A DNA stretch of 53,472 nt from Macrostomum lignano (Eukaryota): assembly GCA_002269645.1 (NCBI GenBank), contig NIVC01000828.1:1-53472 (forward strand), given 5' to 3'. A program made the position numbers and the translations under genes. The notes beneath the pieces are model-generated. The model worked only from the letters and a program-made list of their open reading frames with translations, was not told where the DNA came from and ran no database searches. Within the stretch, counting starts at the first letter, position 1. The number at the start of each line of letters is the position of its first letter. Below, one piece after another: positions 12,554 through 53,472 of this stretch.

Positions 12554-15500
12554 AATTCAACCTGGCCTCGTTGATAAGTGCAGCAGCACCGAAAGCTGCT
12601 GCCGCTGCAGCCGCCGACGCCTGGTTGTCAGTCCATGCCGGCTCCATCGCCAGCAGCCGGCTGGGCTGCAGTCAGCAGGCCCTACGGAAGCAGGACATCG
12701 ACCAGAAGATTCTGCTGAACCAAATCGACGAGTTGGACGCCAGGCTGTCCAAATTGAACGATGCGGCAGTCAGCAGCGCCTATGCCGAGCGGTTCAACAA
12801 AGCACGGAGCGATGTGGCCAGCAATCAGAGCGCCATTGCCTACCTGCGCCAGATAGCCAGCCTCGAGGACGTCCTGTCTGAGTCGTGTCGCCGGGCTGCC
12901 GATCAGGCCATCGGCTTGTCTCAAGGACAGGCGGCGGCCTCCAGCTTCGACAGCAGCAGCGGCAGGGTGAGTCTGGGGGGGGGCGTCGCCTAGGGGGGAC
13001 TGGGGGGACAAGGAGGATATGCGAATTTGAGCAGCTTTGAGTACATCTCTTCTTTCACTTTGCCCTTGGGGATTTGAGCAGCTTTGAGTACATCTCTTCT
13101 TTCACTTTGCCCTTGGGGATTTGAGCAGCTTTGAGTACATCTCTTCTTTCACTTTGCCCTTGGGGATTTGAGCAGCTGTGAGTACATCTCTTCTTTCACT
13201 TTGCCCTTGGGGATTTGAGCAGCTGTGAGTACATCTCTTCTTTCACTTTGCCCTTGGGGATTTGAGCAGCTTTGAGTACATCTCTTCTTTCACTTTGCCC
13301 TTGGGGATTTGAGCAGCTGTGAGTACATCTCTTCTTTCACTTTGCCCTTGGGGATTTGAGCAGCTTTGAGTACATCTCTTCTTTCACTTTGCCCTTGGGG
13401 ATTTGAGCAGCTTTGAGTACATCTCTTCTTTCACTTTGCCCTTGGGGATTTGAGCAGCTGTGAGTACATCTCTTCTTTCACTTTGCCCTTGAGGATTTGA
13501 GCAGCTGTGAGTACATCTCTTCTTTCACTTTGCCCTTGAGGATTTGAGCAGCTGTGAGTACATCTCTTCTTTCACTTTGCCCTTGGGGATTTGAGCAGCT
13601 GTGAGTACATCTCTTCTTTCACTTTGCCCTTGGGGATTTGAGCAGCTGTGAGTACATCTCTTCTTTCAATCTTGCTTGGGAAATTGAGCAACTTTTTTTA
13701 CTTAATTTCTGTAGAAGAAGAACTCAAAGGCTTGGCCATCACCCCCACAATTCGCATTCAACAGCTAATCAGCAGTGAGGTGTTGCAGACCTGGGAATGG
13801 GTGACTCGGCTCGCCGAGCTGACCCAGCTGCACCTGAAGAACTCGGCAGATTATCACTCGTTCTACCACGACGCCAACGAGCTGGACGGACTGATCAACT
13901 CGCGAAAGCTGACTAACGCTCAAGTCATTGGTTCGATTCCGCCAACAGGACAGCTGAGCTCTATGCAGCGGATGAACACGGTCTTGAGTGTGAGTTTCTA
14001 ACGTGGAGATTGATGCGACTGTAAAGTGGCCAAAGTCCAAGGATTCGGGAGGATCTTCCAAGGATACATAATAACTGTAGGACTGGAAAGTAGCAAATCA
14101 TGGCACCAGGGGCTTTAGCATCAGGGGCTTTAGCACCACGGGCTTTAGCACCAGGGGCTTTAGCACCAGGGGCTTTAGCACCAGGGGCTTTAGCACCAGG
14201 GGCTTTAGTACCAGGGCTTTAGCACCAGGGGCTTTAGCACCAGGGGCTTTAGCACCAGGGGCTTTAGCACCAGGGGCTTTAGCACCAGGGGCTTTAGCAC
14301 CACGGGCTTTAGCACCAGGGGATTTAGCACCAGGGGCTTTAGTACCAGGGGCTTTAGCACTAGGGGCTTTAGCACCAGGGGCTTTAGCACCAGGGGCTTT
14401 AGCACCACGGGCTTTAGCACCAGGGGCTTTAGTACCAGGGGCTTTAGCACCAGGGGATTTAGCACCAGGGGCTTTAGCACCAGGGGCTTTAGCACCAGGG
14501 GCTTTAGCACCAGGGGCTTTAGCACCAGGGGCTTTAGCACCAGGGGATTTAGCACCAGGGGCTTTAGCACCAGGGGCTTTAGCACCAGGGGCTTTAGTAC
14601 CAGGGGCTTTAGCACCAGGGGCTTTAGCACCAGGGGCTTTAGCACCAGGGGCTTTAGCACTAAATGTTTGTGCAATATAGCATATAAAAAGTATTGAACA
14701 GTTATGGAAGTAAAAAATGTTATTATTTTTTCTCCCTATTTTGCAGGACAATTTTTCGAATTTCCTCATGCTATGGCAGCGAGCTGACCAGCTCGTGTCG
14801 CGCAGTCATCGAATTGTCCCGGTTTACCGGCGCAATCAACCGCTGGAGACGCCTCATCCGGGACGTAACATCTTCCGGTTTGATGACGGAGAGGTGAGAG
14901 TGCCATTTGTCGGAGAGTGTTTAGTAGTGTCGGAGAGTGTTTAGTAGTGTCGGAGAGTGTTTAGTAGTGTCGGAGAGTGTTTAGTAGTGCCGGAGGGTGT
15001 TTAGTAGTGTCGGAGACTGTTTAGTAGTGTCGGAGAGTGTTAATTATTGTCGGTGGTGTTTAGTAGTGTTGGAGTGTGTTTAGTAGTGTCGGAGAGTGTT
15101 TAGTAGTGTGGGAGAGTGTTTAGTAGTGTCGGAGAGTGTTTAGTAGTGTCGGAGAGTGTTTATTACTGTCGGAGAGTTTTTAAGAATATCGTCGAATGAA
15201 TTCACTGTTAAAATATTCGATGATGTTTCATAATGTCCTGTAATAAGATTCGAAGAAGGCATGTAGTATCGTACAAGTATTTATCTTGTAGGAGAATGTT
15301 TACACTGTATGAGTGTTTATACGAGAGTAAATGTAGTCTTTATAAGTTTACAAGAGTTTTTTCTGTAAACTCCAACGTTCGTTCGTCCTACAGAACACGT
15401 TGCTGGATTCGGAAGAAGTCGCGGTGCTTGACAATACGAAGCCGTTGACCTGGAAGGTGCGAAAAACTGACGGCACAGTGATGGAGGTGCCCAGCATCTG

Positions 15501-18500
15501 CATCTGGCTGCCGCCACCCGACACAGAGTCTGGGGAAGTGGCTCTCGTGTAAGTGACCTCGGTGATTTGCTCAGATCAGCTGTCACACTCATTTTTTGTT
15601 TGCTCTGTTGTGGGATTGCTCCTAAGATTCTGTAGGATGAGATGCTCTGTTGCGGGCTTGCTCCTAAGATTCTGTAGGATGAGATGCTCTGTTGCGGGCT
15701 TGTTCCTAAGATTCTGTAGGATGAGATGCTCTGTAGCGGGCTTGCTCCTAAGATTCTGTAGGATGAGATGCTCTGTAGCGGGCTTGCTCCTAAGATTCTG
15801 TAGGATGAGATGCTCTGTTGCGGGCTTGTTCCTAAGATTCTGTAGGATGAGATGCTCTGTTGTGGGCTTGTTCCTAAGATTCTGTAGGATGAGATGCTCT
15901 GTTGTGGGATTGTTCCTAAGATTCTGTAGGATGAGATGCTCTGTTGTGGGATTGTTCCTAAGATTCTGTAGGATGAGATGCTCTGTTGTGGGATTGTTCC
16001 TAAGATTCTGTAGGATGAGATGCTCTGTTGTGGGATTGTTCCTAAGATTCTGTAGGATGAGATGCTTTTTGGGTTTGTTCCTAAGATCCTGTAGGACAAA
16101 AGTCATTTGGCTTTTGTCGAATCGGTGACTCGTAACTCTGGATACCATGGTATCTTCTGGGTGGATTAGTCTAGACTAGGAATTCAGAAGGTGAGCTGGG
16201 AGGAGGCGGATGAACCCTGAACGCTAATATATTCATGTGCATGTTTCCTATAACGCGTAACTCTGGATATCGTCTGGGTGGATTAGTCTAGACTAGGAAT
16301 TCAGAAGGTGAGCTGGGAGGAGGCGGATGAGCACTGAACGCTAATATATTCATGTGTATGTTTCCTATATAATGATCCCATTTCATTGGTGTTTATGAAA
16401 TGGGATATTTACTGTCGCACAAGCCATGCGCTGCGCATTCCAGATAGAAAAAAATGTTCTATAGTTCACGTTAGATTACAGAATATGATTGGGCATAGCA
16501 TGTCTGAATTGGAATCACCTCAAGGCGTACTTTGTATCCATGTAATGCATTTCAGCATTCGCAAGAAGTTGTTGAACGCGTGGGCGGCCCTGCTCAGCAA
16601 ATCCAGGGCCTGGCTGGTCAGCTGTTACACCGCCTATTTGCGAAGCCTCGGCCACGGTTCAGTGGTAAGTCCTTGATATTTAGCCAGTAGTGTTTATAAA
16701 TCATGTAGAAAACAACGATTGATACGCTTGGAAATTTCAGCCCGTGTTCTCTAAACTGTTGCCTCAAGTTCGGGAGTTTCTGAACCACCTGGAACGAGCC
16801 TCTGGTGACATCCTGATCGACGTCGAAGGTCGACAGCAGTTGATGAATGCGCTGCGAGTTGTTCGTAATAATCTTGTCGCCTGCGGTGAGCTGCTGAGAC
16901 CACGTGCTCAGTTTTTCATGACAATATTTATCGTTATCGTATCTTTTTCGGATCTGGGTGTGGGTGCCATTTCTGAATGGAACCTGATAGTGAATGTAAT
17001 TTCTGATTATGCATGCCATTTCTGATGGTGAATGCCATTTCTGATGGTGAATGCCATTTCTGATGGTGAATGCCATTTCTGATGGTGAATGCCATTTCTG
17101 ATGGTGAATGCCATTTCTGATGGTGAATGCCATTTCTGATGGTGAATGCCATTTCTGATGGTGAATGCCATTTCTGATGGTGAATGCCATTTCTGATGGT
17201 GAATGCCATTTCTGATGGTGAATGCCATTTCTGATGTTTAATGCCATTTCTGATGGTGAATGCCATTTCTGATGGTGAATGCCATTTCTGATGGTGAACG
17301 CCATTTCTGAATCGGGTCTGATGGTGAACGCCATTTCTGAATCAGATCTGATGGTGAACGCCATTTCTGAATCAGATCTGATGGTGAACGCCATTTCTGA
17401 ATCAGATCTGATGGTGAACGCCATTTCTGAATCAGATCTGATGGTGAACGCCATTTCTGAATCAGATCTGATGGTGAATGCCATTTCTGATGGTGAACGC
17501 CATTTCTGAATCAGATCTGATGGTGAATGCCATTTCTGATGGTGAACGCCATTTCTGAATCGGGTCTGATGGTGAACGCCATTTCTGAATCAGATCAGAT
17601 GGTGAACGCCATTTCTGAATCAGATCTGATGGTGAACGCCATTTCTGAATAGAATCTGATGCCAAGTTGGATTCCTGGTGTGACTGTTCCTTCAGATATA
17701 AAAATTTGTAACCAATAAAAAATCTAGGCCATTTTAAATAAAAGTAAACAGAATAAATTTGCAGCACATTACCTATTAGTAACAGTCTTCAGTGTTAAAC
17801 AACACGCAATAAAATCCCGAATTTCGAATCAGACTCCGAGGAGCAGAGCGCTGTCCGAGAGAGTGAGCTATCGCGACAAAAATCGTTGCTGCAGAAACTG
17901 ATGGACCACCTAAAACACTGGAAGCACCTGAGGGAGCAGGTCGATTTTTCCACCCCGGATCAACGGACTCTGTTGAAAGAGACTACTAATGTGCTGTCGG
18001 CATTCAGCGCTATGAAGTAAGCTTGAAAAAAGCCTTCGCGTTGCTTTCTATCTGGGTAATTGTTTCGGTTGACGAGCAGTCCTATTGTTTCAAAGTTAAC
18101 CAAAGTTGGCTAGTACTAAGCCACCACCTTGCTGCCTTCGAGTAATTCTTAGCATCGAGCTGCCGTAGGAGCTCAAATTCTCAGTAGTTCTCAGTAGTTC
18201 TTAGTAGTTCTCAGTAGTTCTTAGTAGTTCTCAGTAGTTCTCAATAGATCTCCGTAACTCTCAGTAGTTCTCAGTAGTTCTCAGTAGTTCGCAGTAGTTC
18301 TCAGTAGTTCTCAGTAGTTCTCAGTAGTTCGCAGTAGTTCTCAGTAGTTCTCAGTAGTTCTCAGTAGTTCTCAGATAGTTCTCAGTAGTTCTCAGTAGTT
18401 CTCAGTAGTTCTCAGTAGTTCTTAGTAGTTCTCAGATTGTTCTCAATAGTTCTCAGTAGTTCTCAGTAGTTCTTAGTAGTTCTTAGTAGTTCTCAGATAG

Positions 18501-21500
18501 TTCTCAGTAGTTCTCAGTAGTTCCAGTAGTTCTCAATAGTTCTCCGTAACTCTCAGTAGTTCTCAGTAGTTCTCAGTAGTTCTCAATAGTTCTCCGTAAC
18601 TCTCAGTAGTTCTCAGTAGTTCTCAGTAGTTCTCAATAGATCTCCGTAACTCTCAGTAGTTCTCAGTAGTTCTCAGTAATTCTCAATAGATCTCCGTAAC
18701 TCTCAGTAGTTCTCAGTAGTTCTCAGATAGTTCTCAGTAGTTCTCAGTAGTTCTCAGTAGTTCTCAGTAGTTCTCAGTAGTTCTCAGTAGTTCTCAGTAG
18801 TTCTCAGTAGTTCTCAGTAGTTCTCAGTAGTTTTCAGTAGTTCTCAGTAGTTCTCAGTAGTTCTCAGTAGTTCTCAGTAGTTCTCAGTAGTTTTCAGTAG
18901 TTCTCAGTAGTTCTCAGTAGTTCTCAATAGTTCTCAGTAATTCTCAATAGTTCTCCGTAACTCTCAGTAGTTCTCAGTAGTTCTCAGTAGTTCTCAGATA
19001 GTTCTCAGTAGTTCTTAGTAGTCAGTGAGCTTATTATGGCCTCTTAAATTTGTCTATCAAAACTCTTACAGCCAGTTCCAGAGCGACAGCATGTCCCAAA
19101 TAGAAGAGCTTCAGGCTAGAATAGACGAATGGCAGTTCCACAGTCCTCTATCGAGAGCCTCGTCCGCTAGGCAAAGCGATGTTCTGGTACGTAAAAATCA
19201 AGCTCAAAAATATAGATTTTCTGAGGAAACTAAAGCGAAACCAATGAAATTTTATAGGAAGCAGTAGCTTCGCGACTCGACAGAGACGTCAGTAACGAGC
19301 GCAGGCCTGGTTGGGAGGCAGACAGACGTGACATGCTCACGTACAACTTAATGTCGGAGACTGTTCAGCACTCCAGGCTTAGCGAGCACTGGCCCAGCAG
19401 CAAGTCAGTCACAAGCTGCGCCACTCAAACCGACGTGGCGACTGATAGAGATAAAGACAAAGACAAAGACTGGTCAAAGCATGTGGACGCATTTTCAAGC
19501 AACGCCCATCAGAAAAGTGTTCAACCAACGCACAGCGCCGAAACTGTTAGCATAGTTTACAGTTACATTGAAGAAAACGAGGAGGAAGTGAAGGAATATC
19601 TTAGACAGAAGTGCCCTCATCCGATTGTCAACGCAACGTCAGCTGATTGGACAGTAGCCAAAGACGAAGAGTCAACAGATCAGCTGGACAGTCGGCAAAG
19701 CTTCAAGGTTGCGACGTCAAGGCAACCAATGATAGAGACAGTCGGTGTTGATTGTCAAACCGAACTACCGACATTGGCGACGACGGAGCTTCGTTTCGAA
19801 CGAGCTTTTGCCGATGGGAATGCTATTGGTCGCCAGCGCACAATCGAGGCCAGCGTTGCTTGTAAGCCTGCGGATAAATCGCTGACGCGGGACACGGAGA
19901 GCCGATTCGCGATAGATAAAAGCAGCACCGAAACAGCGACAGTAAACTTAGAATACTTTACAAGCAATGTACTGGTCACAACACCGTCGCTCATGGTCAC
20001 CGCAACAGGCACCTTCATTGAAGACGAAATCATCGAAGTGCCAGAAAAAGCAAAACAGCTAAAAGCTGGCGTTCCAAAAGAACCAACCAAATTAATTGAT
20101 GCATGCGTAGGTTTTCAACAGGAAACCGTGGTAGCCGAATGTCAAAGCTTCGTTGAAACACCCTACATTGAAAGTACAGTCCAAGCCAAGAGAACCGTAA
20201 GCGACTCCAGCGTAAGCCATGAAGTCTCCCTAAAAGAAGGTTCAATCAGTATCAGAATGCAACCAAAGTTGTCGGAAGCAGGAACTTTCCTTGAAACACA
20301 GTCTCACGAAAACACCGTGAAAACGAAACGTTCCGTCTGTGATTCCATGATCAGAATCAAAGCCGCGGTAGTTGATAACTGCGTGACTACAAGCCCTCAG
20401 AATTCAGCAAAAAGCTGCGCCAGCTCGCTTGAGCTCGAGTACGAAGCCGCTGGCATACAAGTAAAGCAGGCCGTTTCTGAAATGGGCTCTTGTGAGCAAA
20501 TCCTTACGGCCGACGGGGGCATGAGATACAAGGACGAGCCGAAACTGGAAGCGTGCGCCAGCTCGCTCGAGTTCTCCTTCGAGCATGGCTCGTCTCGAGC
20601 AGCGTCCGTCGTCAAAGAGGCTTCTGTACAAGTCAATCAGCCAGTCGGAGCCATGGGAGCGTTCGACGAAGTGCTCACAGCCGACGGCGGCATGAGATAC
20701 AAGGACGAGCCAAAACTGGAAGCATGCGCCAGCTCGCTTGAGCTCGAGTACGAAGCCGCTGGCATACAAGTAAAGCAGGCCGTTTCTGAAATGGGCTCTT
20801 GTGAGCAAACCCTTACGGCCGACGGGGGCATGAGATACAAGGACGAGCCGAAACTGGAAGCGTGCGCCAGCTCGCTCGAGTTCTCCTTCGAGCATGGCTC
20901 GGCTCGAGCTGCGTCCATCGTCAAAGAGGCTTCTGTACAAGTCAATCAGCCAGTCGGAGCCATGGGAGCGTTCGACGAAGTGCTCACAGCCGACGGCGGC
21001 ATGAGATACAAGGACGAGCCGAAACTGGAAGCATGCGCCAGCTCGCTTGAGCTCGAGTACGAAGCCGCTGGCATACAAGTAAAGCAGGCCGTTTCTGAAA
21101 TGGGCTCTTGTGAGCAAATCCTTACGGCCGACGGGGGCATGAGATACAAGGACGAGCCGAAACTGGAAGCGTGCGCCAGCTCGCTCGAGTTCTCCTTCGA
21201 GCATGGCTCGGCTCGAGCAGCGTCCGTCGTCAAAGAGGCTTCTGTACAAGTCAATCAGCCAGTCGGAGCCATGGGAGCGTTCGACGAAGTGCTCACAGCC
21301 GACGGCGGCATGAGATACAAGGACGAGCCGAAACTGGAAGCATGCGCCAGCTCGCTTGAGCTCGAGTACGAAGCCGCTGGCATACAAGTAAAGCAGGCCG
21401 TTTCTGAAATGGGCTCTTGTGAGCAAACCCTTACGGCCGACGGGGGCATGAGATACAAGGACGAGCCGAAACTGGAAGCGTGCGCCAGCTCGCTCGAGTT

Positions 21501-24500
21501 CTCCTTCGAGCATGGCTCGGCTCGAGCAGCGTCCGTCGTCAAAGAGGCTTCTGTACAAGTCAATCAGCCAGTCGGAGCCATGGGAGCGTTCGACGAAGTG
21601 CTCACAGCCGACGGCGGCATGAGATACAAGGACGAGCCGAAACTGGAAGCATGCGCCAGCTCGCTTGAGCTCGAGTACGAAGCCGCTGGCATACAAGTAA
21701 AGCAGGCCGTTTCTGAAATGGGCTCTTGTGAGCAAATCCTTACGGCCGACGGGGGCATGAGATACAAGGACGAGCCGAAACTGGAAGCGTGCGCCAGCTC
21801 GCTCGAGTTCTCCTTCGAGCATGGCTCGGCTCGAGCAGCGTCCGTCGTCAAAGAGGCTTCTGTACAAGTCAATCAGCCAGTCGGAGCCATGGGAGCGTTC
21901 GACGAAGTGCTCACAGCCGACGGCGGCATGAGATACAAGGACGAGCCGAAACTGGAAGCATGCGCCAGCTCGCTTGAGCTCGAGTACGAAGCCGCTGGCA
22001 TACAAGTAAAGCAGGCCGTTTCTGAAATGGGCTCTTGTGAGCAAATCCTTACGGCCGACGGGGGCATGAGATACAAGGACGAGCCGAAACTGGAAGCGTG
22101 CGCCAGCTCGCTCGAGTTCTCCTTCGAGCACGGCTCGGCTCGAGCAGCGTCCGTCGTCAAAGAGGCTTCTGTACAAGTCAATCAGCCAGTCGGAGCCATG
22201 GGAGCGTTCGACGAAGTGCTCACAGCCGACGGCGGCATGAGATACAAGGACGAGCCGAAACTGGAAGCATGCGCCAGCTCGCTTGAGCTCGAGTACGAAG
22301 CCGCTGGCATACAAGTAAAGCAGGCCGTTTCTGAAATGGGCTCTTGTGAGCAAATCCTTACGGCCGACGGGGGCATGAGATACAAGGACGAGCCGAAACT
22401 GGAAGCGTGCGCCAGCTCGCTCGAGTTCTCCTTCGAGCATGGCTCGTCTCGAGCAGCGTCCGTCGTCAAAGAGGCTTCTGTACAAGTCAATCAGCCAGTC
22501 GGAGCCATGGGAGCGTTCGACGAAGTGCTCACAGCCGACGGCGGCATGAGATACAAGGACGAGCCGAAACTGGAAGCATGCGCCAGCTCGCTTGAGCTTG
22601 AGTACGAAGCCGCTGGCATACAAGTAAAGCAGGCCGTTTCTGAAATGGGCTCTTGTGAGCAAATCCTTACGGCCGACGGGGGCATGAGATACAAGGACGA
22701 GCCGAAACTGGAAGCGTGCGCCAGCTCGCTCGAGTTCTCCTTCGAGCATGGCTCGGCTCGAGCAGCGTCCGTCGTCAAAGAGGCTTCTGTACAAGTCAAT
22801 CAGCCAGTCGGAGCCATGGGAGCGTTCGACGAAGTGCTCACAGCCGACGGCGGCATGAGATACAAGGACGAGCCGAAACTGGAAGCATGCGCCAGCTCGC
22901 TTGAGCTCGAGTACGAAGCCGCTGGCATACAAGTAAAGCAGGCCGTTTCTGAAATGGGCTCTTGTGAGCAAATCCTTACGGCCGACGGGGGCATGAGATA
23001 CAAGGACGAGCCGAAACTGGAAGCGTGCGCCAGCTCGCTCGAGTTCTCCTTCGAGCATTGCTCGGCTCGAACAGCGTCCGTCGTCAAAGAGGCTTCTGTA
23101 CAAGTCAATCAGCCAGTCGGAGCCATGGGAGCGTTCGACGAAGTGCTCACAGCCGACGGCGGCATGAGATACAAGGACGAGCCGAAACTGGAAGCATGCG
23201 CCAGCTCGCTTGAGCTCGAGTACGAAGCCGCTGGCATACAAGTAAAGCAGGCCGTTTCTGAAATGGGCTCTTGTGAGCAAATCCTTACGGCCGACGGGGG
23301 CATGAGATACAAGGACGAGCCGAAACTGGAAGCGTGCGCCAGCTCGCTCGAGTTCTCCTTCGAGCATGGCTCGGCTCGAGCAGCGTCCGTCGTCAAAGAG
23401 GCTTCTGTACAAGTCAATCAGCCAGTCGGAGCCATGGGAGCGTTCGACGAAGTGCTCACAGCCGACGGCGGCATGAGATACAAGGACGAGCCAAAACTGG
23501 AAGCATGCGCCAGCTCGCTTGAGCTCGAGTACGAAGCCGCTGGCATACAAGTAAAGCAGGCCGTTTCTGAAATGGGCTCTTGTGAGCAAATCCTTACGGC
23601 CGACGGGGGCATGAGATACAAGGACGAGCCGAAACTGGAAGCGTGCGCCAGCTCGCTCGAGTTCTCCTTCGAGCATGGCTCGGCTCGAGCAGCGTCCGTC
23701 GTCAAAGAGGCTTCTGTACAAGTCAATCAGCCAGTCGGAGCCATGGGAGCGTTCGACGAAGTGCTCACAGCCGACGGCGGCATGAGATACAAGGACGAGC
23801 CGAAACTGGAAGCATGCGCCAGCTCGCTTGAGCTCGAGTACGAAGCCGCTGGCATACAAGTAAAGCAGGCCGTTTCTGAAATGGGCTCTTGTGAGCAAAT
23901 CCTTACGGCCGACGGGGGCATGAGATACAAGGACGAGCCGAAACTGGAAGCGTGCGCCAGCTCGCTCGAGTTCTCCTTCGAGCATGGCTCGGCTCGAGCA
24001 GCGTCCGTCGTCAAAGAGGCTTCTGTACAAGTCAATCAGCCAGTCGGAGCCATGGGAGCGTTCGACGAAGTGCTCACAGCCGACGGCGGCATGAGATACA
24101 AGGACGAGCCGAAACTGGAAGCATGCGCCAGCTCGCTTGAGCTCGAGTACGAAGCCGCTGGCATACAAGTAAAGCAGGCCGTTTCTGAAATGGGCTCTTG
24201 TGAGCAAATCCTTACGGCCGACGGGGGCATGAGATACAAGGACGAGCCGAAACTGGAAGCGTGCGCCAGCTCGCTCGAGTTCTCCTTCGAGCATGGCTCG
24301 GCTCGAGCAGCGTCCGTCGTCAAAGAGGCTTCTGTACAAGTCAATCAGCCAGTCGGAGCCATGGGAGCGTTCGACGAAGTGCTCACAGCCGACGGCGGCA
24401 TGAGATACAAGGACGAGCCGAAACTGGAAGCATGCGCCAGCTCGCTTGAGCTCGAGTACGAAGCCGCTGGCATACAAGTAAAGCAGGCCGTTTCTGAAAT

Positions 24501-29453: not shown

Positions 29454-29642
29454 TTCGATATGATCAATCATTTGCGAACATTGTATTATATTTTTGTAGC
29501 TTTATTCACCACTTGGATCGAATATCTGGTAACCCGATAATCTTAAACGCTTATCTGTCTGCACTAATATTTCTTTCCTGCTGTTGTGCTGCTAAAGATG
29601 AAACAGTTAGGTTGAAATTGATTCTTGTAAGCTTTTTCAAGT

Positions 29643-29920
29643 GGCAAGCCCTGACAAGTGACAAGTCCTGACAACTGAAAAGCCCTGACAAGTGACAAGC
29701 CCTGACAAATGAAAAGCCCTGACAAGTGACAAGCCCTGACAAGTGACAAGCCCTGACAAGTGACAAGTCCTGACAACTGAAAAGCCCTGACAAGTGACAA
29801 GCCCTGACAACTGAAAAGCCCTGACAAGTGACAAGCCCTGACAAGTGACAAGCCCTGACAAGTGACAAGCCCTGACAAATGACAAGCCTTGACAAATGAC
29901 AAGCCCTCACAAGTGACAAG
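29643..29920. repeat. 17-bp minisatellite (AAGCCCTGACAAGTGAC)n in the probable 3' UTR
   Basis: Directly visible between the stop at 29453 and AATAAA at 29958. Confidence 0.9.
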
Positions 29921-30409
29921 CTTTTACCAAAAAGTTAAATGACAAAATCGTTGATTGAATAAAGCATTCCCGAAATTGATAAAAACTGTAGAATCTATGA
30001 AACAGGGCCTGCGACAATATCAGTAGCCAACGAAGAAGTAAACAGAATTGTATTTTTAGCAGCTGCACTGTTTTTATTTTGAATATTGACTAGATAAAAA
30101 TGATTAAGTCTAACATTCACCTTAGTGTGCCCTGATATTTTTCACCCATCTACTTATAACAAAAGCTTATTAGTGCTTTTTCTAATAACATATTTCTCTC
30201 TTCAGCTTTTTCGTATTTAGTTACTTGATAGCAAATTTATCAAAGTTATGCCTTTGGCGCCAGAATCTAGAATGCCAGCTTAACCTGTGTGACTTTATTT
30301 TTAATAAATATAAAGCCCCTATTGAGCCCATTAAACGACGTGAAGTTCTTAACTTGAAAATTTTTGGAATTTTACTCTTTTTAACTCATATCCCTTTGCT
30401 CCCTTAGCA

Positions 30410-30606
30410 TTGAATCTGCCTCTTTGATCCTTGAATGTGCCTTCAGTATCCTTGAATCTGCTTCCAGTATCCTTGAATCTGCCTTCAGTATCCTTGAATC
30501 TGCCTCCAGTATCCTTGAATCTGCTTCCAGTATCCTTGAATCTGCCTTCAGTATCCTTGAATCTGCCTCCAGTATCCTTGAATCTGCCTCCAGTATCCTT
30601 GAATCC
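30410..30606. repeat. 21-bp minisatellite (CCTTGAATCTGCCTCCAGTAT)n, about 9 copies
   Basis: Directly visible; abuts the mariner relic. Confidence 0.92.
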
Positions 30607-44500: not shown

Positions 44501-47500
44501 GGCTGTGTACAACTACATTCAAGAGTACGAGTCCGAAGTAAAACGCTACCTGCACGAAAATATTCCGAGTCCGATAGTGCACTCTCAGTCCGCGTACGCT
44601 GCTGCGTCGGCATCTGAGGGCCGATCCCAGCTGAGAGTTGACGTCGAAGAAAAGTTAGAGTACTCGGAAACGCGAAAGCTTGCAACGGCCATTTCGAGCT
44701 CCAATGAAAGCGAAGCGAATGCGACTTCAAGCTCAGGCTCCGGCACCGGTGCTGCTGTTGGAAAAACCCAAGCAGTCACGCGCGAGGCTGGCTGTCAAAC
44801 TGCGCAGATACCAATAGCCAGCACAGGTTGCGATAAGCAGAGCGTCATGGCGGAGAGCAAGATTGCCTGCCACCTGCACTATACTGTGCAGAATGATCTG
44901 TTCTGTCTAGAAATAGAAAGCAGCGACTCAGAGACTCAAACAGATCAGTCTGGCCAAACAGTGGAGACGGAAGAGAAACTCATTAAGTACGAAAGCCGGG
45001 TTGATGAGAGAGTCGAAAGACAAAGCGTAGACATCGAGATAAAAATCGAAGAGGAGACAAACCGTAAAAAGCTCATGGCAACTCAACCACCGAGAAAAGT
45101 AGAAGTTCAAGATGCCTGCGTAAAAACGACCTGTGAAACAGAGGAATCGGTTTTAGTTGTTAAGCAACAAATAAAATATATGCAACTGTCTCAGGAGCTA
45201 GTCACTGCCGAACAGGGAGTCAACTGCGTAATCGAAAACCAAATTTCAGATTTTGAGTGTTCATTTGACCTGGAATTTGCGGATAGCAGTGTAAATTGCA
45301 AAACTGAAGAAAAAACTCAGGAAATCAGCACTTGCGAAGTGCACTATGAGAACCACTTTAGTGAAGCCGCTCTTCAAACAGATTCTTTCACAGGCGAAAG
45401 CAGCATCTCCGTAAGCCCAAAACTTGCGTGCATGAGCGTTGAAATGGAAATTTCAACCGAAGATGCGTCTGTTTTATGCAAAGATGAGACAAAAATTCGA
45501 GAGTGTTTCTCCCACTTAGAAAAATCTTATAAGGAAAGCAACACCAAAGCACAGATAACAACGAAAGACGTTTCTGTAACAGCCAAACAAGTCGTCAGCG
45601 AACTGGGATTTGCTGAAGAAGTGCAAAAAATCAAAGCAGTTAACAGCAACGTAAAATTCAGTAACATGCCGAAAATTCTAGAGTGCAACAGCTCGCTTGA
45701 ACTTATGCACGAAAATGCTGGTGTACGAGCACAGCCGACCGTAGATGAGATGGGCGTCTGTGAGCAAGTTATGTTCTCTGATGGTGCCATGAGATTCAAG
45801 GATGAACCGAAGGTCGAAGAGTGCGCCAGCTCGCTTGAGTTGTTGGTCAAGTCAGGCTTCGTTCGTACGAAAACTAAAGTCCAAGAAGCTTCTGTGCAAG
45901 TCAATCAAGAAGTCGGAGAGATTGGCGTATACAACGAGGTACTAAGCGCGAGCGAAAACGTAAGATTCAAGGACGAACCGCAGGTCGAAGAGTGCACCAG
46001 CTCGCTTGAGTTGTTGGTCAAGTCAGGCTTCGTTCGTACGAAAACTAAAGTCCAAGAAGCTTCTGTGCAAGTCAATCAAGAAGTCGGAGAGATTGGCGTA
46101 TACAACGAGGTACTCAGCGCGAGCGAAAACGTGAGATTCAAGGACGAACCGAAAGTTGAAGAGTGCGCCAGCTCGCATGAGCTTATACACAAAACGACTG
46201 GTGTGCGAGCACAGCCAACCGTGGATGAGATGGGCGCTTATGAGACGCTGCTCACATCAGACGGGTCGGTACGCTACAAAGAAGAGCCGAAGCTCAACGA
46301 ATGCGCCTCATTCCTGGAAACGACTGTCTTGAGTGAGTCCATTCGAGTAAGCCAGAGTGTGAACGAAATGGGCTTCTGTGAGATGTTGGAGACATCAGAC
46401 ACGACAATGCGCTACAAAGAAGAGCAAGAAGTGAGAGACTGCGCATCGTTCCTCGAGACATCCGTCATGATAGGATCTGTTCGAGTGAAACAAGAAATAG
46501 ACGACATGGGCGTCTGTGAGATGCTGCTCGCATCAGACGCTTCGGTACGATACAAGGAGGAGCCGAAACTCGACGAGTGCTTCACATTCTCCGAGACCAC
46601 ATTCCTGGAAGGCGCTATCCGAGTAGAGACACTTGTGAAGGAGGCTTCAGTTCAAGTGGAACAGTCAGTCGATGGAATGGGCGTCTGTGAGATGCTGCTC
46701 ACATCAGACGGGTCGGTACGCTACAAGGAAGAGCCGAAACTCGACGAGTGCTTCACATTCTCCGAGACCACATTCCTGGAAGGCGCTATCCGAGTAGAGA
46801 CACTTGTGAAGGAGGATTCAGTTCAAGTGGAACAGTCAGTCGATGGAATGGGCGTCTGTGAGATGCTGCTCGCATCAGACGCTTCGGTACGATACAAGGA
46901 GGAGCCGAAACTCGACGAGTGCTTCACATTCTCCGAGACCACATTCCTGGAAGGCGCTATCCGAGTAGAGACACTTGTGAAGGAGGCTTCAGTTCAAGTG
47001 GAACAGCCAGTCGATGGAATGGGCGTCTGTGAGATGCTGCTCACATCAGACGGGTCGGTACGCTACAAGGAAGAGCCGAAACTCGACGAGTGCTTAACAT
47101 TCTCCGAGACCACATTCCTGGAAGGCGCTATCCGAGTAGAGACACTTGTGAAGGAGGCTTCAGTTCAAGTGGAACAGCCAGTCGATGGAATGGGCGTCTG
47201 TGAGATGCTGCTCACATCAGACGGGTCGGTACGCTACAAGGAAGAGCCGAAACTCGACGAGTGCTTCACATTCTCCGAGACCACATTCCTGGAAGGCGCT
47301 ATCCGAGTAGAGACACTTGTGAAGGAGGCTTCAGTTCAAGTGGAACAGTCAGTCGATGGAATGGGCGTCTGTGAGATACTGCTCACATCAGACGGGTCGG
47401 TACGCTACAAGGAAGAGCCGAAGCTCAACGAATGCGCCTCATTCCTGGAAACGACTGTCTTGAGTGAGTCCATTCGAGTAAGCCAGAGTGTGAACGAAAT

Positions 47501-50500
47501 GGGCTTCTGTGAGATGTTGGAGACATCAGACACGACAATGCGCTACAAAGAAGAGCTAGAAGTGAGAGACTGCGCATCGTTCCTCGAGACATCCGTCATG
47601 ATAGGATCTGTTCGAGTGACACAAGAAATAGACGACATGGGCGTCTGTGAGATGCTGCTCGCATCAGACGCTTCGGTACGATACAAGGAGGAGCCGAAAC
47701 TCGACGAGTGCTTCACATTCTCCGAGACCACATTCCTGGAAGGCGCTATCCGAGTAGAGACACTTGTGAAGGAGGCTTCAGTTCAAGTGGAACAGCCAGT
47801 CGATGGAATGGGCGTCTGTGAGATGCTGCTCACATCAGACGGGTCGGTACGCTACAAGGAAGAGCCGAAACTCGACGAGTGCTTCACATTCTCCGAGACC
47901 ACATTCCTGGAAGGCGCTATCCGAGTAGAGACACTTGTTAAGGAGGCTTCAGTTCAAGTGGAACAGTCAGTCGATGGAATGGGCGTCTGTGAGATGCTGC
48001 TCACATCAGACGGGTCGGTACGCTACAAGGAGGAGCCGAAACTCGACGAGTGCTTCACATTCTCCGAGACCTCATTCATGGAAGGCGCTATCCGAGTAGA
48101 GACACTTGTGAAGGAGGCTTCAGTTCAAGTGGAACAGTCAGTCGATGGAATGGGCGTCTGTGAGATACTGCTCACATCAGACGGGTCGGTACGCTACAAG
48201 GAAGAGCCGAAGCTCAACGAATGCGCCTCATTCCTGGAAACGACTGTCTTGAGTGAGTCCATTCGAGTAAGCCAGAGTGTGAACGAAATGGGCTTCTGTG
48301 AGATGTTGGAGACATCAGACACGACAATGCGCTACAAAGAAGAGCTAGAAGTGAGAGACTGCGCATCGTTCCTCGAGACATCCGTCATGATAGGATCTGT
48401 TCGAGTGACACAAGAAATAGACGACATGGGCGTCTGTGAGATGCTGCTCGCATCAGACGCTTCGGTACGATACAAGGAGGAGCCGAAACTCGACGAGTGC
48501 TTCACATTCTCCGAGACCTCATTCATGGAAGGCGCTATCCGAGTAGAGACACTTGTGAAGGAGGCTTCAGTTCAAGTGGAACAGTCAGTCGATGGAATGG
48601 GCGTCTGTGAGATACTGCTCACATCAGACGGGTCGGTACGCTACAAGGAAGAGCCGAAGCTCAACGAATGCGCCTCATTCCTGGAAACGACTGTCTTGAG
48701 TGAGTCCATTCGAGTAAGCCAGAGTGTGAACGAAATGGGCTTCTGTGAGATGTTGGAGACATCAGACACGACAATGCGCTACAAAGAAGAGCTAGAAGTG
48801 AGAGACTGCGCATCGTTCCTCGAGACATCCGTCATGATAGGATCTGTTCGAGTGACACAAGAAATAGACGACATGGGCGTCTGTGAGATGCTGCTCGCAT
48901 CAGACGCTTCGGTACGATACAAGGAGGAGCCGAAACTCGACGAGTGCTTCACATTCTCCGAGACCACATTCCTGGAAGGCGCTATCCGAGTAGAGACACT
49001 TGTGAAGGAGGCTTCAGTTCAAGTGGAACAGCCAGTCGATGGAATGGGCGTCTGTGAGATGCTGCTCACATCAGACGGGTCGGTACGCTACAAGGAAGAG
49101 CCGAAACTCGACGAGTGCTTAACATTCTCCGAGACCACATTCCTGGAAGGCGCTATCCGAGTAGAGACACTTGTGAAGGAGGCTTCAGTTCAAGTGGAAC
49201 AGCCAGTCGATGGAATGGGCGTCTGTGAGATGCTGCTCACATCAGACGGGTCGGTACGCTACAAGGAAGAGCCGAAACTCGACGAGTGCTTCACATTCTC
49301 CGAGACCACATTCCTGGAAGGCGCTATCCGAGTAGAGACACTTGTGAAGGAGGCTTCAGTTCAAGTGGAACAGTCAGTCGATGGAATGGGCGTCTGTGAG
49401 ATGCTGCTCACATCAGACGGGTCGGTACGCTACAAGGAAGAGCCGAAACTCGACGAGTGCTTCACATTCTCCGAGACCACATTCCTGGAAGGCGCTATCC
49501 GAGTAGAGACACTTGTGAAGGAGGCTTCAGTTCAAGTGGAACAGTCAGTCGATGGAATGGGCGTCTGTGAGATGCTGCTCACATCAGACGGGTCGGTACG
49601 CTACAAGGAAGAGCCGAAACTCGACGAGTGCTTCACATTCTCCGAGACCACATTCCTGGAAGGCGCTATCCGAGTAGAGACACTTGTGAAGGAGGCTTCA
49701 GTTCAAGTGGAACAGTCAGTCGATGGAATGGGCGTCTGTGAGATGCTGCTCACATCAGACGGGTCGGTACGCTACAAGGAAGAGCCGAAACTCGACGAGT
49801 GCTTCACATTCTCCGAGACCACATTCCTGGAAGGCGCTATCCGAGTAGAGACACTTGTGAAGGAGGCTTCAGTTCAAGTGGAACAGTCAGTCGATGGAAT
49901 GGGCGTCTGTGAGATACTGCTCACATCAGACGGGTCGGTACGCTACAAGGAAGAGCCGAAGCTCAACGAATGCGCCTCATTCCTGGAAACGACTGTCTTG
50001 AGTGAGTCCATTCGAGTAAGCCAGAGTGTGAACGAAATGGGCTTCTGTGAGATGTTGGAGACATCAGACACGACAATGCGCTACAAAGAAGAGCTAGAAG
50101 TGAGAGACTGCGCATCGTTCCTCGAGACATCCGTCATGATAGGATCTGTTCGAGTGACACAAGAAATAGACGACATGGGCGTCTGTGAGATGCTGCTCGC
50201 ATCAGACGCTTCGGTACGATACAAGGAGGAGCCGAAACTCGACGAGTGCTTCACATTCTCCGAGACCACATTCCTGGAAGGCGCTATCCGAGTAGAGACA
50301 CTTGTGAAGGAGGCTTCAGTTCAAGTGGAACAGTCAGTCGATGGAATGGGCGTCTGTGAGATGCTGCTCACATCAGACGGGTCGGTACGCTACAAGGAAG
50401 AGCCGAAACTCGACGAGTGCTTCACATTCTCCGAGACCACATTCCTGGAAGGCGCTATCCGAGTAGAGACACTTGTGAAGGAGGCTTCAGTTCAAGTGGA

Positions 50501-53472
50501 ACAGTCAGTCGATGGAATGGGCGTCTGTGAGATGCTGCTCACATCAGACGGGTCGGTACGCTACAAGGAAGAGCCGAAACTCGACGAGTGCTTCACATTC
50601 TCCGAGACCACATTCCTGGAAGGCGCTATCGAGTAGAGACACTTGTGAAGGAGGCTTCAGTTCAAGTGGAACAGTCAGTCGATGGAATGGGCGTCTGTGA
50701 GATGCTGCTCACATCAGACGGGTCGGTACGCTACAAGGAAGAGCCGAAACTCGACGAGTGCTTCACATTCTCCGAGACCACATTCCTGGAAGGCGCTATC
50801 CGAGTAGAGACACTTGTGAAGGAGGCTTCAGTTCAAGTGGAACAGTCAGTCGATGGAATGGGCGTCTGTGAGATGCTGCTCACATCAGACGGGTCGGTAC
50901 GCTACAAGGAAGAGCCGAAACTCGACGAGTGCTTCACATTCTCTGAGACCACATTCCTGGAAGGCGCTATCCGAGTAGAGACACTTGTGAAGGAGGCTTC
51001 AGTTCAAGTGGAACAGTCAGTCGATGGAATGGGCGTCTGTGAGATGCTGCTCACATCAGACGGGTCGGTACGCTACAAGGAAGAGCCGAAACTCGACGAG
51101 TGCTTCACATTCTCCGAGACCACATTCCTGGAAGGCGCTATCGAGTAGAGACACTTGTGAAGGAGGCTTCAGTTCAAGTGGAACAGTCAGTCGATGGAAT
51201 GGGCGTCTGTGAGATGCTGCTCACATCAGACGGGTCGGTACGCTACAAGGAAGAGCCGAAGCTCAACGAATGCGCCTCATTCCTGGAAACGACTGTCTTG
51301 AGTGAGTCCATTCGAGTAAGCCAGAGTGTGAACGAAATGGGCTTCTGTGAGATGTTGGAGACATCAGACACGACAATGCGCTACAAAGAAGAGCTAGAAG
51401 TGAGAGACTGCGCATCGTTCCTCGAGACATCCGTCATGATAGGATCTGTTCGAGTGACACAAGAAATAGACGACATGGGCGTCTGTGAGATGCTGCTCGC
51501 ATCAGACGCTTCGGTACGATACAAGGAGGAGCCGAAACTCGACGAGTGCTTCACATTCTCCGAGACCACATTCCTGGAAGGCGCTATCCGAGTAGAGACA
51601 CTTGTGAAGGAGGCTTCAGTTCAAGTGGAACAGCCAGTCGATGGAATGGGCGTCTGTGAGATGCTGCTCACATCAGACGGGTCGGTACGCTACAAGGAAG
51701 AGCCGAAACTCGACGAGTGCTTCACATTCTCCGAGACCACATTCCTGGAAGGCGCTATCCGAGTAGAGACACTTGTGAAGGAGGCTTCAGTTCAAGTGGA
51801 ACAGTCAGTCGATGGAATGGGCGTCTGTGAGATGCTGCTCACATCAGACGGGTCGGTACGCTACAAGGAAGAGCCGAAACTCGACGAGTGCTTCACATTC
51901 TCCGAGACCACATTCCTGGAAGGCGCTATCCGAGTAGAGACACTTGTGAAGGAGGCTTCAGTTCAAGTGGAACAGTCAGTCGATGGAATGGGCGTCTGTG
52001 AGATGCTGCTCACATCAGACGGGTCGGTACGCTACAAGGAAGAGCCGAAGCTCAACGAATGCGCCTCATTCCTGGAAACGACTGTCTTGAGTGAGTCCAT
52101 TCGAGTAAGCCAGAGTGTGAACGAAATGGGCTTCTGTTGAGATGTTGGAGACATCAGACACACAATGCGCTACAAAGAAGAGCTAGAAGTGAGAGACTGC
52201 CGCATCGTTCCTCGAGACATCCGTCATGATAGGATCTGTTCGAGTGACACAAGAAATAGACGACATGGGCGTCTGTGAGATGCTGCTCGCATCAGACGCT
52301 TCGGTACGATACAAGGAGGAGCCGAAACTCGACGAGTGCTTCACATTCTCCGAGACCACATTCCTGGAAGGCGCTATCCGAGTAGAGACACTTGTGAAGG
52401 AGGCTTCAGTTCAAGTGGAACAGTCAGTCGATGAATGGGCGTCTGTGAGATGCTGCTCACATCAGACGGGTCGGTACGCTACAAGAAGAGCCGAAACTCG
52501 ACGAGTGCTTCACATTCTCCGAGACCACATTCCTGGAAGGCGCTATCCGAGTAGAGACACTTGTGAAGGAGGCTTCAGTTCAAGTGGAACAGTCAGTCGA
52601 TGGAATGGGCGTCTGTGAGATGCTGCTCACATCAGACGGCGTCGGTACGCTACAAGGAAGAGCCGAAACTCGACGAGTGCTTCACATTCTCCGAGACCAC
52701 ATTCCTGGAAGGCGCTATCCGAGTAGAGACACTTGTGAAGGAGGCTTCAGTTCAAGTGGAACAGTCAGTCGATGGAATGGGGCGTCTGTTGAGATGCTGC
52801 TCACATCAGACGGGTCGGTTACGCTACAAGGAAGAGCCGAAACTCGACGAGTGCTTCACATTCTCCGAGACCACATTCCTGGAAGGCGCTATCCGAGTAG
52901 AGACACTTGTGAAGGAGGCTTCAGTTCAAAGTGGAACAGTCAGTCGATGGAATGGGCGTCTGTGAGATGCTGCTCACATCAGACGGTCGGTTACGCTACA
53001 AGGAAGAGCCGAAACTCGACGAGTGCTTCACATTCTCTGAGAACCACATTCCTGGAAGGCGCTATCCGAGCTAGAGACACTTGTGAAGGAGGCTTCAGTT
53101 CAAGTGGAACAGTCAAGTCGATGGAATGGGCGTCTGTGAGATGCTGCTTCACATCAGACGGGTCGGTACGCTACAAGGAAGAGCCGAAACTCGACGAGTG
53201 CTTCACATTCTCCGAGCACCACATTCCTGAAGGCGCTATCCGAGTAGAGACACTTGTGAAGGAGGGCTTCAGTATCAAGTGGAACAGTCAGTCGATGGAA
53301 TGGGCGTCTGTGAGATGCTGCTCACATCAGACGGGTCGGTACGCTACAAGGAAGAGCCGAAGCTCAACGAATGCGCCCTCATTCCTGGAACGACTGTCCT
53401 TGAGTGAGTCCATTCGAGTAAGCCAGAGTGTGAACGAAATGGGCTTCTGTGAGATGTGGAGACATCAGACAC
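33761..53472 (+). CDS. Paralog 2: plakin-domain protein with a giant repetitive exon, more than 3600 aa, 3'-partial
   Basis: Exons 33761(ATG)-34165, 34615-34839, 35423-35569, 36209-36363, 39812-39923, 40025-40175, 41980-42163, 43906-44029, 44115->53472. Intron phases are the same as in paralog 1 and four exons have identical lengths (225, 147, 155, 184 nt). Frameshifts occur at about 50630, 51142 and repeatedly after 52130. Confidence 0.85.
35590..35840. repeat. Degenerate (GGGTCTGCAGTGT)-based intronic minisatellite
   Basis: Directly visible. Confidence 0.88.
35865..36190. repeat. 18-19-bp intronic minisatellite (TGCTCACTGATGCATCCTA)n
   Basis: Directly visible; ends about 18 nt before the acceptor at 36208. 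Confidence 0.9.
37128..37559 (-). mobile_element. Candidate solo LTR (432 bp)
   Basis: Termini TGTGACAG...CTGTCACA form a perfect 8-bp inverted repeat with TG..CA ends; TATAAATA on the minus strand at 37355-37348. No TSD or recognisable PBS. Confidence 0.35.
37642..37821. repeat. 13-bp minisatellite (GAGTCATCCCAAT)n, about 14 copies
   Basis: Directly visible. Confidence 0.92.
37944..38583 (+). mobile_element. 5'-truncated RTE-clade LINE (RT C-terminus), with 3' hairpin and (TTG)n tail
   Basis: Frame FVYLGG...REDLRRRRGLAWAAF...LLYNAETWTLT...RRRRLQLAGHIIR to TGA 38497. Hairpin ACACTGGA-gacta-TCCAGTGT at 38497-38517. TTG tract about 38520-38583. TTTCTAAGA at 37935-37943 and 39622-39630 is a candidate TSD. 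Confidence 0.85.
38584..39604 (-). mobile_element. 5'-truncated I-group non-LTR retrotransposon (RNase H + C-terminal CCHC)
   Basis: Open frame ...KPWLPRIE...IHYFNDGSAS...SFQAELSALHLAL...LILTDSQSAI...LQWIPGHSGTPGNERADTEAK...CLRCDLLEDKDHFLECPDL...; stop at 38597, then a (CAA)n tail on the minus strand. Confidence 0.88.
40354..41760. repeat. 15-bp intronic minisatellite (GGGGCTTTAGCACCA)n, about 94 copies
   Basis: Directly visible; same unit and orientation as 14101-14661. Confidence 0.96.
42200..43850. repeat. 22-bp intronic minisatellite (GCTCCAGTCTGTTTGTGAGCAT)n, about 75 copies
   Basis: Directly visible; fills almost the whole intron 42164-43905. Confidence 0.96.
46246..53472 (+). repeat. 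Coding tandem array of 46-aa D and E units and a 57-aa C unit, arranged (D-E)-Cn
   Basis: C = LLTSDGSVRYKEEPKLDECFTFSETTFLEGAIRVETLVKEASVQVEQSVDGMGVCEM; D = LLTSDGSVRYKEEPKLNECASFLETTVLSESIRVSQSVNEMGFCEM; E = LETSDTTMRYKEELEVRDCASFLETSVMIGSVRVTQEIDDMGVCEM. E-to-E spacings of 1131, 789, 447, 1302 and 1300 bp equal 276+171n. Confidence 0.95.

Follow-up and report, generated by a model that had tools for sequence, protein, structure and literature searches.

We analyzed a stretch of 53,472 nucleotides from the genome of the flatworm Macrostomum lignano (scaffold NIVC01000828.1 of assembly Mlig_3_7, GCA_002269645.1, positions 1 to 53,472; referred to here as the window), whose minisatellite-rich, eukaryotic sequence contains two tandem genes on the same strand, paralog A (Mlig007606 type) and paralog B (Mlig031564 type). 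Both genes consist of eight small exons, which encode a head related to the plakin domain, followed by one giant exon, which encodes a long and largely repetitive tail (Table 1). Exon blocks were located by cross-translating the two regions, and the splice sites were fixed by reading the DNA and then verified computationally. The introns are of the GT-AG type throughout, the exon-end phases are 0,0,0,2,0,1,2,0 in each gene, and four of the eight small exons have equal lengths in A and B (225, 147, 155, and 184 nt). The heads encoded by these exons (497 amino acids in A and 501 in B) are 51% identical, with a ratio of nonsynonymous to synonymous substitution rates (dN/dS) of 0.34 for the whole head and 0.22 for exons 2 to 4, which indicates purifying selection. 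Conservation between the two genes is confined to the short exon blocks, the sequence in between being unrelated apart from a common minisatellite. The last intron before the giant exon is short (71 nt in A, after exon 8), and 4.3 kb separate the stop codon of A, which ends at 29453, from the start of B. The acceptor of the giant exon of B is of the NAGNAG kind, with position 44115 used in one deposited protein (P0005) and 44118 in another (P0003).

A preliminary description of this locus, made from the sequence alone, had proposed two same-strand paralogs with eight matching small exons, the same phases, four identical exon lengths, a head of about 500 amino acids, homologous 46/57-amino-acid repeats in a giant exon, and a complete 3' end for A. 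Our reconstruction by hand bore out all of these points. The spans given for the giant exons held as well, but neither exon is one open frame as assembled. Most introns of A and B hold differing minisatellites, with periods of 10 to 47 bp, and one 15-bp minisatellite, GCACCAGGGGCTTTA, fills both intron 2 of A (14103-14660) and intron 6 of B (40354-41761).

Table 1. Exons, repeats, and neighboring features of paralogs A and B (positions are those of the window unless another coordinate system is named; aa, amino acids).
Feature	Position	Strand	Details
A exon 1, 413 nt	12554-12966	+	acceptor tctctcacctgtcag, donor gtgagt; 47% identical to B exon 1; same sequence in genomic copy L002
A exon 2, 225 nt, spectrin-repeat helix of about SR4	13765-13989	+	82% aa identity to B exon 2; aligns to SR4 of plectin and desmoplakin
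A exon 3, 147 nt, from the last part of SR4 into SH3	14747-14893	+	within deposited protein P0001
A exon 4, 155 nt, core of plakin-type SH3	15394-15548	+	Pfam SH3_10 over residues 237-301
A exon 5, 109 nt	16556-16664	+	identical splicing in deposited P0001 and P0013
A exon 6, 145 nt	16741-16885	+	splice sites and P0001
A exon 7, 184 nt	17833-18016	+	splice sites and P0001
A exon 8, 115 nt	19072-19186	+	junction between ...SDVL and EAVASR... in P0001 and P0013
A giant exon, 10,196 nt	19258-29453	+	linker, repeat array, unique C-terminal region, nine 23-aa repeats; TAA 29451-29453
A repeat array	20412-28050	+	Tandem Repeats Finder: 309-bp period (57 aa + 46 aa), ~24 copies, 99% identity
A frameshift site, four-G run	25459-25462	+	GGGGG or GGCGG in other units
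A nine 69-bp (23-aa) repeats, VTRREGTALESTDSVSSARAQLG	28737-29359	+	near A C terminus
B exon 1, 405 nt	33761-34165	+	ATG start, MASLETPD; splice acceptor 13 nt upstream; P0005, P0008, and P0010 begin alike
B exon 2, 225 nt	34615-34839	+	splice sites
B exon 3, 147 nt	35423-35569	+	splice sites
B exon 4, 155 nt, SH3 core	36209-36363	+	Pfam SH3_10 over residues 235-299
B exon 5, 112 nt	39812-39923	+	agrees with P0005
B exon 6, 151 nt	40025-40175	+	TAEPSAQLTF segment in P0005
B exon 7, 184 nt	41980-42163	+	splice sites
B exon 8, 124 nt	43906-44029	+	splice sites
B giant exon, at least 9,358 nt	44115 to beyond 53472	+	open 44115-50633; cut by scaffold gap
B repeat array	45651-53472	+	diverged 46/57-aa units at first; further on, 57-aa (171-bp) units mixed with blocks of 276 bp (two 46-aa units)
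N gap	L001 15075-16579		beyond window end 53472
RNase H-domain open reading frame, retroelement fragment	38597-39322	-	in B intron 4; Pfam E 2.2e-11 and RVT_3 match
Acidic, faintly nucleoplasmin-like protein	7882-8820	-	neighbor gene
Syntrophin-like protein exon	4817-6022	-	PDZ end, PH domains, syntrophin C-terminal PH; E 4.5e-20
Unassigned gene, open 3' end	127-519	+	neighbor gene

The relationship of the head to plakins is evident at several levels. The Pfam family SH3_10 (PF17902; cutoff, 22.8 bits) matches over its full 65-position profile in A (43.8 bits; E value, 2.7e-11), in B (46.6 bits; E value, 3.6e-12), and in a third paralog described below (42.8 bits). A sequence search of the PDB with the head gave significant matches only to desmoplakin (3r6n, spectrin repeats [SRs] SR3-SR6; E value, 1.3e-9) and plectin (3pe0, SR4-SR5-SH3; E value, 5.7e-9), and the same two structures were the only significant matches in a profile search, with E values of ∼1e-10. 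The regions flanking the SH3 domain align to SR4 and SR5 of plectin and desmoplakin. An AlphaFold model of the head, obtained from a three-sequence alignment, is weak (predicted local distance difference test [pLDDT] score of 56.7; template-modeling score of ∼0.2) and was used only for secondary structure and for the ranking of matches; it predicts long helices on either side of an SH3-like block of strands, and Foldseek placed 3r6n (E value, 7.6e-8; all 490 columns aligned) and 3pe0 at the top of the matches to this model. Given that the SH3_10 family, the sequence and profile searches, and the predicted fold all lead to the same proteins, we conclude that the head is a partial plakin domain of about four spectrin repeats (SR3-SR6) with an SH3 domain inserted in SR5. 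The SR4 and SH3 signatures noticed in the preliminary description are thereby confirmed.

The head aligns end to end with the four-repeat desmoplakin fragment (SR3-SR6) and is followed by a poorly conserved linker in which no spectrin repeat is detectable. Pfam found no CH domain in the heads of A and B, and it found no family at all, CH included, in plus-strand open reading frame (ORF) fragments of at least 28 amino acids over the 3.7 kb upstream of A (8821-12553) or the 4.3 kb upstream of B (29454-33760). This agrees with the earlier statement that B begins with MASLETPD and lacks CH domains, the ATG-containing exon of B being homologous to exon 1 of A. Word-index homologue searches with the head of B and with a profile of the three paralogous heads returned just three M. 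lignano fragments and no outgroup plakins for a phylogeny.

The tails start with an acidic, poorly conserved linker, which takes up the first 420 to 510 amino acids of each giant exon and in which one motif of ∼25 residues, VY.YI.E.E.EVK.YL...P.PIV, is common to all three paralogs. In A, this linker leads into an array in which units of 57 and 46 amino acids alternate over ∼24 double units with 99% identity, 48 complete units starting with MRYK; the 57-amino-acid unit is the 46-amino-acid unit with an 11-residue insertion. Beyond the array lie a unique region of 240 amino acids, nine 23-amino-acid repeats, and the stop codon. Since the repeat units of A and B are 39 to 56% identical to each other, with dN/dS values of 0.16 to 0.42, they are homologous and have been constrained as a protein read in the plus-strand frame. 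The positions conserved across units follow the pattern R-[YF]-K-[DE]-E, together with a C and a G, and the arrays are kept homogeneous by concerted evolution. Overall, the tails have isoelectric points of 4.3 to 4.6, 16 to 20% Asp plus Glu, and ∼3% Cys; for the conceptual tail of A (3,398 amino acids), the values are 4.6, 16.5%, and 2.8%, respectively. Two long antisense ORFs in the A array (20404-25443, 1,679 amino acids, and 25272-28034, 920 amino acids, both on the minus strand) were rejected as genes and are regarded as by-products of the stop-free repeat period, because the B array has no equivalent and the transcripts are on the plus strand.

In Pfam scans that covered the linkers and arrays as well as the C terminus of A, no CH, spectrin, plakin-repeat (PF00681), EF-hand, or GAR domain was identified, so that the preliminary description was right in finding the tail of A free of canonical plakin modules. 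No coiled-coil rod was found in the tails by Pfam and PDB searches, no dedicated coiled-coil prediction having been made. Pfam matches within the arrays (Tdi1_C, CBM_21, DUF6736, and others) were discarded as subthreshold artifacts summed over the repeats, with no individually significant stretch, and when the PDB was searched with the repeats, by sequence and by profile, nothing significant emerged, matches to PilF and survivin being dismissed as chance level. An exhaustive HMMER search with the first 1,200 amino acids of the giant exon of B against 1.84 billion representative proteins yielded five matches, all from M. lignano. As had been supposed earlier, the tail module thus looks lineage specific, with no relative outside M. 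lignano in this very large protein set. The unique C-terminal region of A gave no database match when used as a query; it is missing from the databases because the deposited model of A ends at a frameshift upstream of it.

Both genes have in fact already been deposited, as PAA76339.1, PAA76340.1, and PAA76341.1, all on this scaffold; they are hypothetical proteins in GenBank, and the name given to the deposited models in UniProt is "Desmoplakin SH3 domain-containing protein." PAA76339.1 represents A from exon 2 into the array, starting at the Met of exon 2 because exon 1 has no in-frame ATG and ending at the stop created by the frameshift at 25459-25462. PAA76340.1 comprises the head of B and 395 amino acids of its giant exon, while PAA76341.1 is a piece of the B array. 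The five HMMER matches and their cluster mates are likewise GenBank BOX15_Mlig models or UniProt entries. Five deposited sequences (P0001, P0013, P0005, P0010, and P0003) reproduce our hand-built exon junctions in both paralogs, including the junction of exon 8 with the giant exon; exact-sequence look-ups of P0001 and P0003 gave no record. Mlig_3_7 is a PacBio/Canu assembly for which Illumina reads served in the polishing, and it was annotated with a transcriptome built from RNA-seq data under guidance of the genome (PMC5730564). Because the BOX15_Mlig models derive from these RNA-seq data, the joining of head and tail is supported at the RNA level, with the caveat that short-read transcripts collapse the arrays. 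Transcripts in which the plakin exons are not joined to the giant exon, the outcome that would have spoken most directly against the gene structure as first described, are thus not what the GenBank and UniProt models represent.

The deposited B models P0005, P0008, and P0010 lack 11 residues, LLLEDSSCAQQ (33 nt, positions 33966-33998 in exon 1), which are present in the window as well as in the same-length exon 1 of a homeologous copy (L003) and have no GT-AG ends. Their absence from the models may reflect an allele, a transcript-assembly artifact, or noncanonical processing. As to expression, in the accessible part of the positional RNA-seq study by Brand et al. 2020 (PMC7336406), Mlig000934 g3, g4, g9, and g11, which are sister copies of the repeat-cluster transcript, are classified as "Non-Specific," with reads already in head-only fragments. 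This weakly points to expression in body-wide somatic tissue rather than to gonad- or tail-specific expression.

More copies of the tandem pair are found on two other scaffolds (L002 and L003), as expected for the neopolyploid genome of M. lignano. The exons of these homeologs are 97 to 100% identical, and the surrounding sequence, introns included, is ∼92% identical; a comparison of B with its homeologous copy gives dN/dS values of 0.30 (head) and 0.39 (linker). On L003 (26345-34526), the giant exon of B runs on into a second long array, made up of 46-amino-acid units only (MGVCEMLQTSVGSVRYKEELEVRECASFLETSVMVGSVRAKQDVED), and continues for more than 10.7 kb without reaching its end. Because this second array is absent from the window, the full B protein must exceed in size and complexity what is seen there.

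A third member of the family, Mlig024865 (PAA91320.1, A0A1I8I886), lies on yet another scaffold (L004). With its protein as a tblastn query, six of nine exons (1, 2, 4, 7, 8, and the giant exon) were recovered in order at this locus, exons 3, 5, and 6 and the phases being outside the comparison. Its exon 2 has 225 nt, the linker motif is present, and its giant exon contains more than 16 kb of 24-amino-acid repeats, VRFKEEIAVTGSGCFRETSYNESR. These repeats share the R-[FY]-K-[DE]-E and Cys pattern with the 46/57-amino-acid units, and a score of 9.7 bits, compared with at most 6.8 in 1,000 shuffles, weakly suggests that the two kinds of repeat are homologous. The features by which we define the family, namely, eight small exons with phases 0,0,0,2,0,1,2,0, an SR-SH3-SR head, and a giant exon that carries the VY.YI.E..EVK.YL motif together with short acidic repeats, are all present in A and B. 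An insertion like the retroelement fragment in intron 4 of B is probably the reason why the older UniProt model of the third paralog, A0A1I8I886, was named "RNase H domain-containing protein."

The window stops exactly where a run of ∼1.5 kb of N starts in the scaffold. The contig after this gap (L001 16580-22178) restarts at intron 8 and the giant exon of B, with 99.7% identity over 5.6 kb to positions 44055-49650 of the window. We therefore rejected the idea of a third gene copy beyond the gap and attribute this stretch to scaffolding redundancy: judging from the identity, the scaffold sets two overlapping or allelic contigs of one exon one after the other. In GenBank, the gap region after 53472 has been given additional "genes," with products of 406 and 1,826 amino acids. 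On the other side of the pair, the region upstream of A contains the neighboring genes listed in Table 1, and a protein of the type encoded at 7882-8820 on the minus strand also lies upstream of an A-type copy on scaffold NIVC01003798.1.

Among the known plakins, desmoplakin, envoplakin, and periplakin resemble the Macrostomum proteins in having an N-terminal plakin domain with an SH3 domain in a spectrin repeat and no CH domain, and desmoplakin-type genes also encode the head in many small exons and the tail in one or two very large ones. In contrast to these proteins, however, the Macrostomum head amounts to about half a plakin domain, no coiled-coil rod, plakin-repeat domain, or plakin linker is detectable, and the tail consists of orphan 46/57-amino-acid repeats. 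In the structural alignment, only ∼15% of the residues are identical to those of desmoplakin, and nothing points to orthology, no dedicated orthology test having been made. Epiplakin offers another parallel, since it consists mostly of tandem repeats in one exon, with units made nearly identical by recent homogenization; it differs in being built of plakin-repeat domains without a plakin head, whereas the Macrostomum proteins do have a head, and their repeats bear no relation to plakin repeats.

Spectraplakins (Drosophila Shot, C. elegans VAB-10, and MACF1/dystonin) are, to our knowledge, the only plakin type described in invertebrates, and plakins outside vertebrates are usually described as one spectraplakin gene. 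In them, as in the Macrostomum genes, the plakin domain precedes an exon of ∼10 kb that is made up of tandem repeats. Unlike in spectraplakins, no CH domain, PF00681, spectrin rod, EF-hand, or GAS2/GAR domain was found in the Macrostomum genes, and these occupy three separate compact loci instead of one complex gene. The tandem CH actin-binding domain of spectraplakins was not encountered in the regions of A and B scanned, more distant exons being possible for A. The giant repeat exon of spectraplakins is internal and splices onto exons for a spectrin rod and GAR domain; that of A closes with a stop codon, after which B has its own start, and the 3' end of B lies beyond the gap and was not reached in L003 either.

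Two automatic UniProt names, Nesprin-1 and AMOTL1 (A0A1I8H8D0 and A0A1I8GZB3), are attached to short fragments of exon 8 plus linker, and both were rejected. The likeness to these proteins does not go beyond their being large and rich in helices and repeats. We discarded the name Nesprin-1 because CH, spectrin, and KASH features are missing and because the C terminus of A (...RSDDGVFEGFD) has no hydrophobic or transmembrane segment; for AMOTL1, Pfam scans detected no angiomotin domain.

Plectin, desmoplakin, and the gigantic Shot isoforms are likewise built from small exons for the plakin domain and a giant exon for the tail, and because of this resemblance to known plakin genes the exon layout as such is not new. 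The novelty lies in the tail module and in the fact that a protostome has several compact genes of this kind. The earlier claim of an undescribed architecture is therefore valid in part: it stands for the tail module, and literature searches found no paper on flatworm or Macrostomum plakins or on these gene identifiers, but it does not extend to the genes themselves, which were already deposited, or to their layout.

Taken together, we think it probable that A and B are two tandem, transcribed, protein-coding paralogs of a plakin-derived family, so far known only from M. lignano, whose products act as cytolinkers. What the data establish is the gene structure, the paralogy, purifying selection, the joining of head and tail in RNA, the homology of the head to plakins, and the lack of known relatives of the tail; the cytolinker role, put forward by analogy, as well as any binding partners and the tissue concerned, are suggested here. 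The plakin domains of plectin, BPAG1e, and desmoplakin dock to membrane or junction complexes, and the SR-SH3-SR head would likewise dock the Macrostomum proteins to a complex of this kind. The giant repeat tail would take the place of the rod, plakin-repeat, or spectrin-GAR modules and act as a very long spacer or as a multivalent binding surface for some cytoskeletal or cortical structure. In this respect the preliminary description went too far, since the junction or cytoskeleton anchor that it presented had been reached purely by inference.

Several observations weigh against such an interpretation. The head of 497 to 501 amino acids covers only about SR3 to SR6, while a complete plakin domain (SR3-SR9) has ∼900 to 1,000 amino acids. 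AlphaFold assigned a pLDDT score of only 26 to six repeat units, an unusable model that offers no structure-based argument for a binding mode of the tail. In the assembly, paralog A has no AUG at the conserved start, and its giant exon is interrupted by a frameshift, a deletion from five to four G residues at 25459-25462. In the giant exon of B there are at least five frameshifts after 50629, with many 1-bp indels and hardly any substitutions. In a comparison of the window with the homeologous copies L003 and L002, the unique C-terminal region of A (28014-28736) differs by ∼10 nonsynonymous changes and 1 synonymous change and thus shows no sign of purifying selection, the total of only ∼12 substitutions being too small to interpret. 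Finally, in the expression study as far as it was accessible, the data cover the sister copies g3, g4, g9, and g11, and the window copy is g7.

The low confidence of the tail model also lends itself to the view that the tail is an intrinsically disordered, acidic bulk or matrix component of, for instance, a dense intracellular web, cation-binding or cross-linked material, or a condensate, with the head only positioning it. Such a role would fit the low isoelectric points and the Asp, Glu, and Cys contents given above; extreme homogenization, with unit numbers and lengths that vary between the paralogs, is typical of material-like repeat proteins, and no known filament-binding domain was found. 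However, a low pLDDT score is to be expected for any orphan repeat aligned from two paralogs and does not prove disorder, and purifying selection acts on the repeat units, whose conserved R-[YF]-K-[DE]-E, C, and G positions suggest a specific structure or specific contacts. We therefore regard a bulk component as rather unlikely.

The start of A and the frameshifts raise the question of whether one or both window copies are decaying pseudogenes or redundant neopolyploid duplicates, perhaps transcribed without yielding a full protein, A being the stronger candidate. A good acceptor precedes exon 1 of A, whose first two bases belong to a split codon and which is otherwise an open, conserved frame without an in-frame ATG. 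No AUG start could be identified: the codon aligned with the ATG of B is a CTG (12562-12564), which is identical in the second genomic copy (window 12554-12566 corresponding to L002 8217-8229) and hence real. A search upstream of A for an exon that combines an ATG with a strong phase-1 donor was negative, and although the spliced leader of M. lignano ends in AUG (PMC8629364), this AUG would fall out of frame at the acceptor at 12554. Nevertheless, the CTG retains the same A(-3)/G(+4) context as the ATG of B and is compatible with non-AUG initiation; A may start at such a codon or in an unannotated upstream exon.

The frameshifts, at which the GenBank proteins end, and the excess of nonsynonymous changes in the C-terminal region of A would also fit decay. 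On closer inspection, the breaks have a different character. They are 1-bp indels accompanied by few substitutions, the one in A being the sole case in a G run, and those in B become denser toward the contig end that abuts the gap, with a dense run at 52137-53472. In A, the frame is open for ∼2,069 codons up to the shift and for another 1,337 beyond it, where the same repeats are read in the shifted frame. The L002 copy, 98 to 99% identical to A, has three frame changes at other positions, with its first and last segments in one frame, which is the pattern of unpolished PacBio arrays. Because the breaks are 1-bp indels with few substitutions, cluster at the contig end by the gap, and lie elsewhere in L002, we infer that they are unpolished long-read errors in near-identical arrays rather than ancestral disabling mutations. 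Together with dN/dS values of 0.2 to 0.4 throughout, this makes pseudogenes or redundant duplicates an improbable explanation. In the B array, moreover, the same 1-bp deletion (CC to C in TATCCGAG) occurs twice, at 50629 and 51141, 512 bp apart; the pair could go back to a single genuine mutation that unequal crossing-over has copied, or to a systematic error.

Very improbable, in our view, is that the head and the giant exon are optional parts of a larger gene of the spectraplakin type, with CH exons upstream or spectrin/GAR exons downstream, as in the gigantic isoforms of Drosophila Shot: spectraplakins do use alternative promoters and giant optional exons, the mid-codon beginning of exon 1 of A allows for an upstream exon, and the 3' end of B lies outside the window, with its giant exon unended in L003, but A ends in a stop codon and B starts 4.3 kb further on with its own ATG, all transcript-based B models start with MASLETPD, no Pfam family was found in the plus-strand ORF fragments upstream of either gene, an unrelated minus-strand gene precedes A, and the compact plan recurs at three separate loci.

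The putative cytolinker family is represented by at least three compact flatworm loci that keep only the SR3-SR6/SH3 head of a plakin and attach to it orphan repeat arrays of several thousand residues. The deposited models are truncated or split by assembly frameshifts and by the scaffold gap, and the true products, of ∼3,900 amino acids or more, are absent from the protein databases. The family bears on no long-standing question. If its members are cytolinkers, the plakin head would be a reusable docking module, and the tails would provide a new type of repeat for study. A further-reaching possibility, which we put forward only tentatively, is that a protostome lineage independently evolved plakins other than spectraplakins, keeping the head and acquiring as a tail a new module of ∼23-amino-acid units with a filament-binding or elastic function, and that these proteins build a cytoskeletal structure specific to Macrostomum; candidates would be the intracellular terminal web of the epidermis and the reinforced anchor cells of the adhesive organs. 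RNA interference, in situ hybridization, and stable transgenesis are established in M. lignano, and if this last possibility is true, a family of at least three loci would offer a genetically tractable case of cytolinkers gaining new tails.

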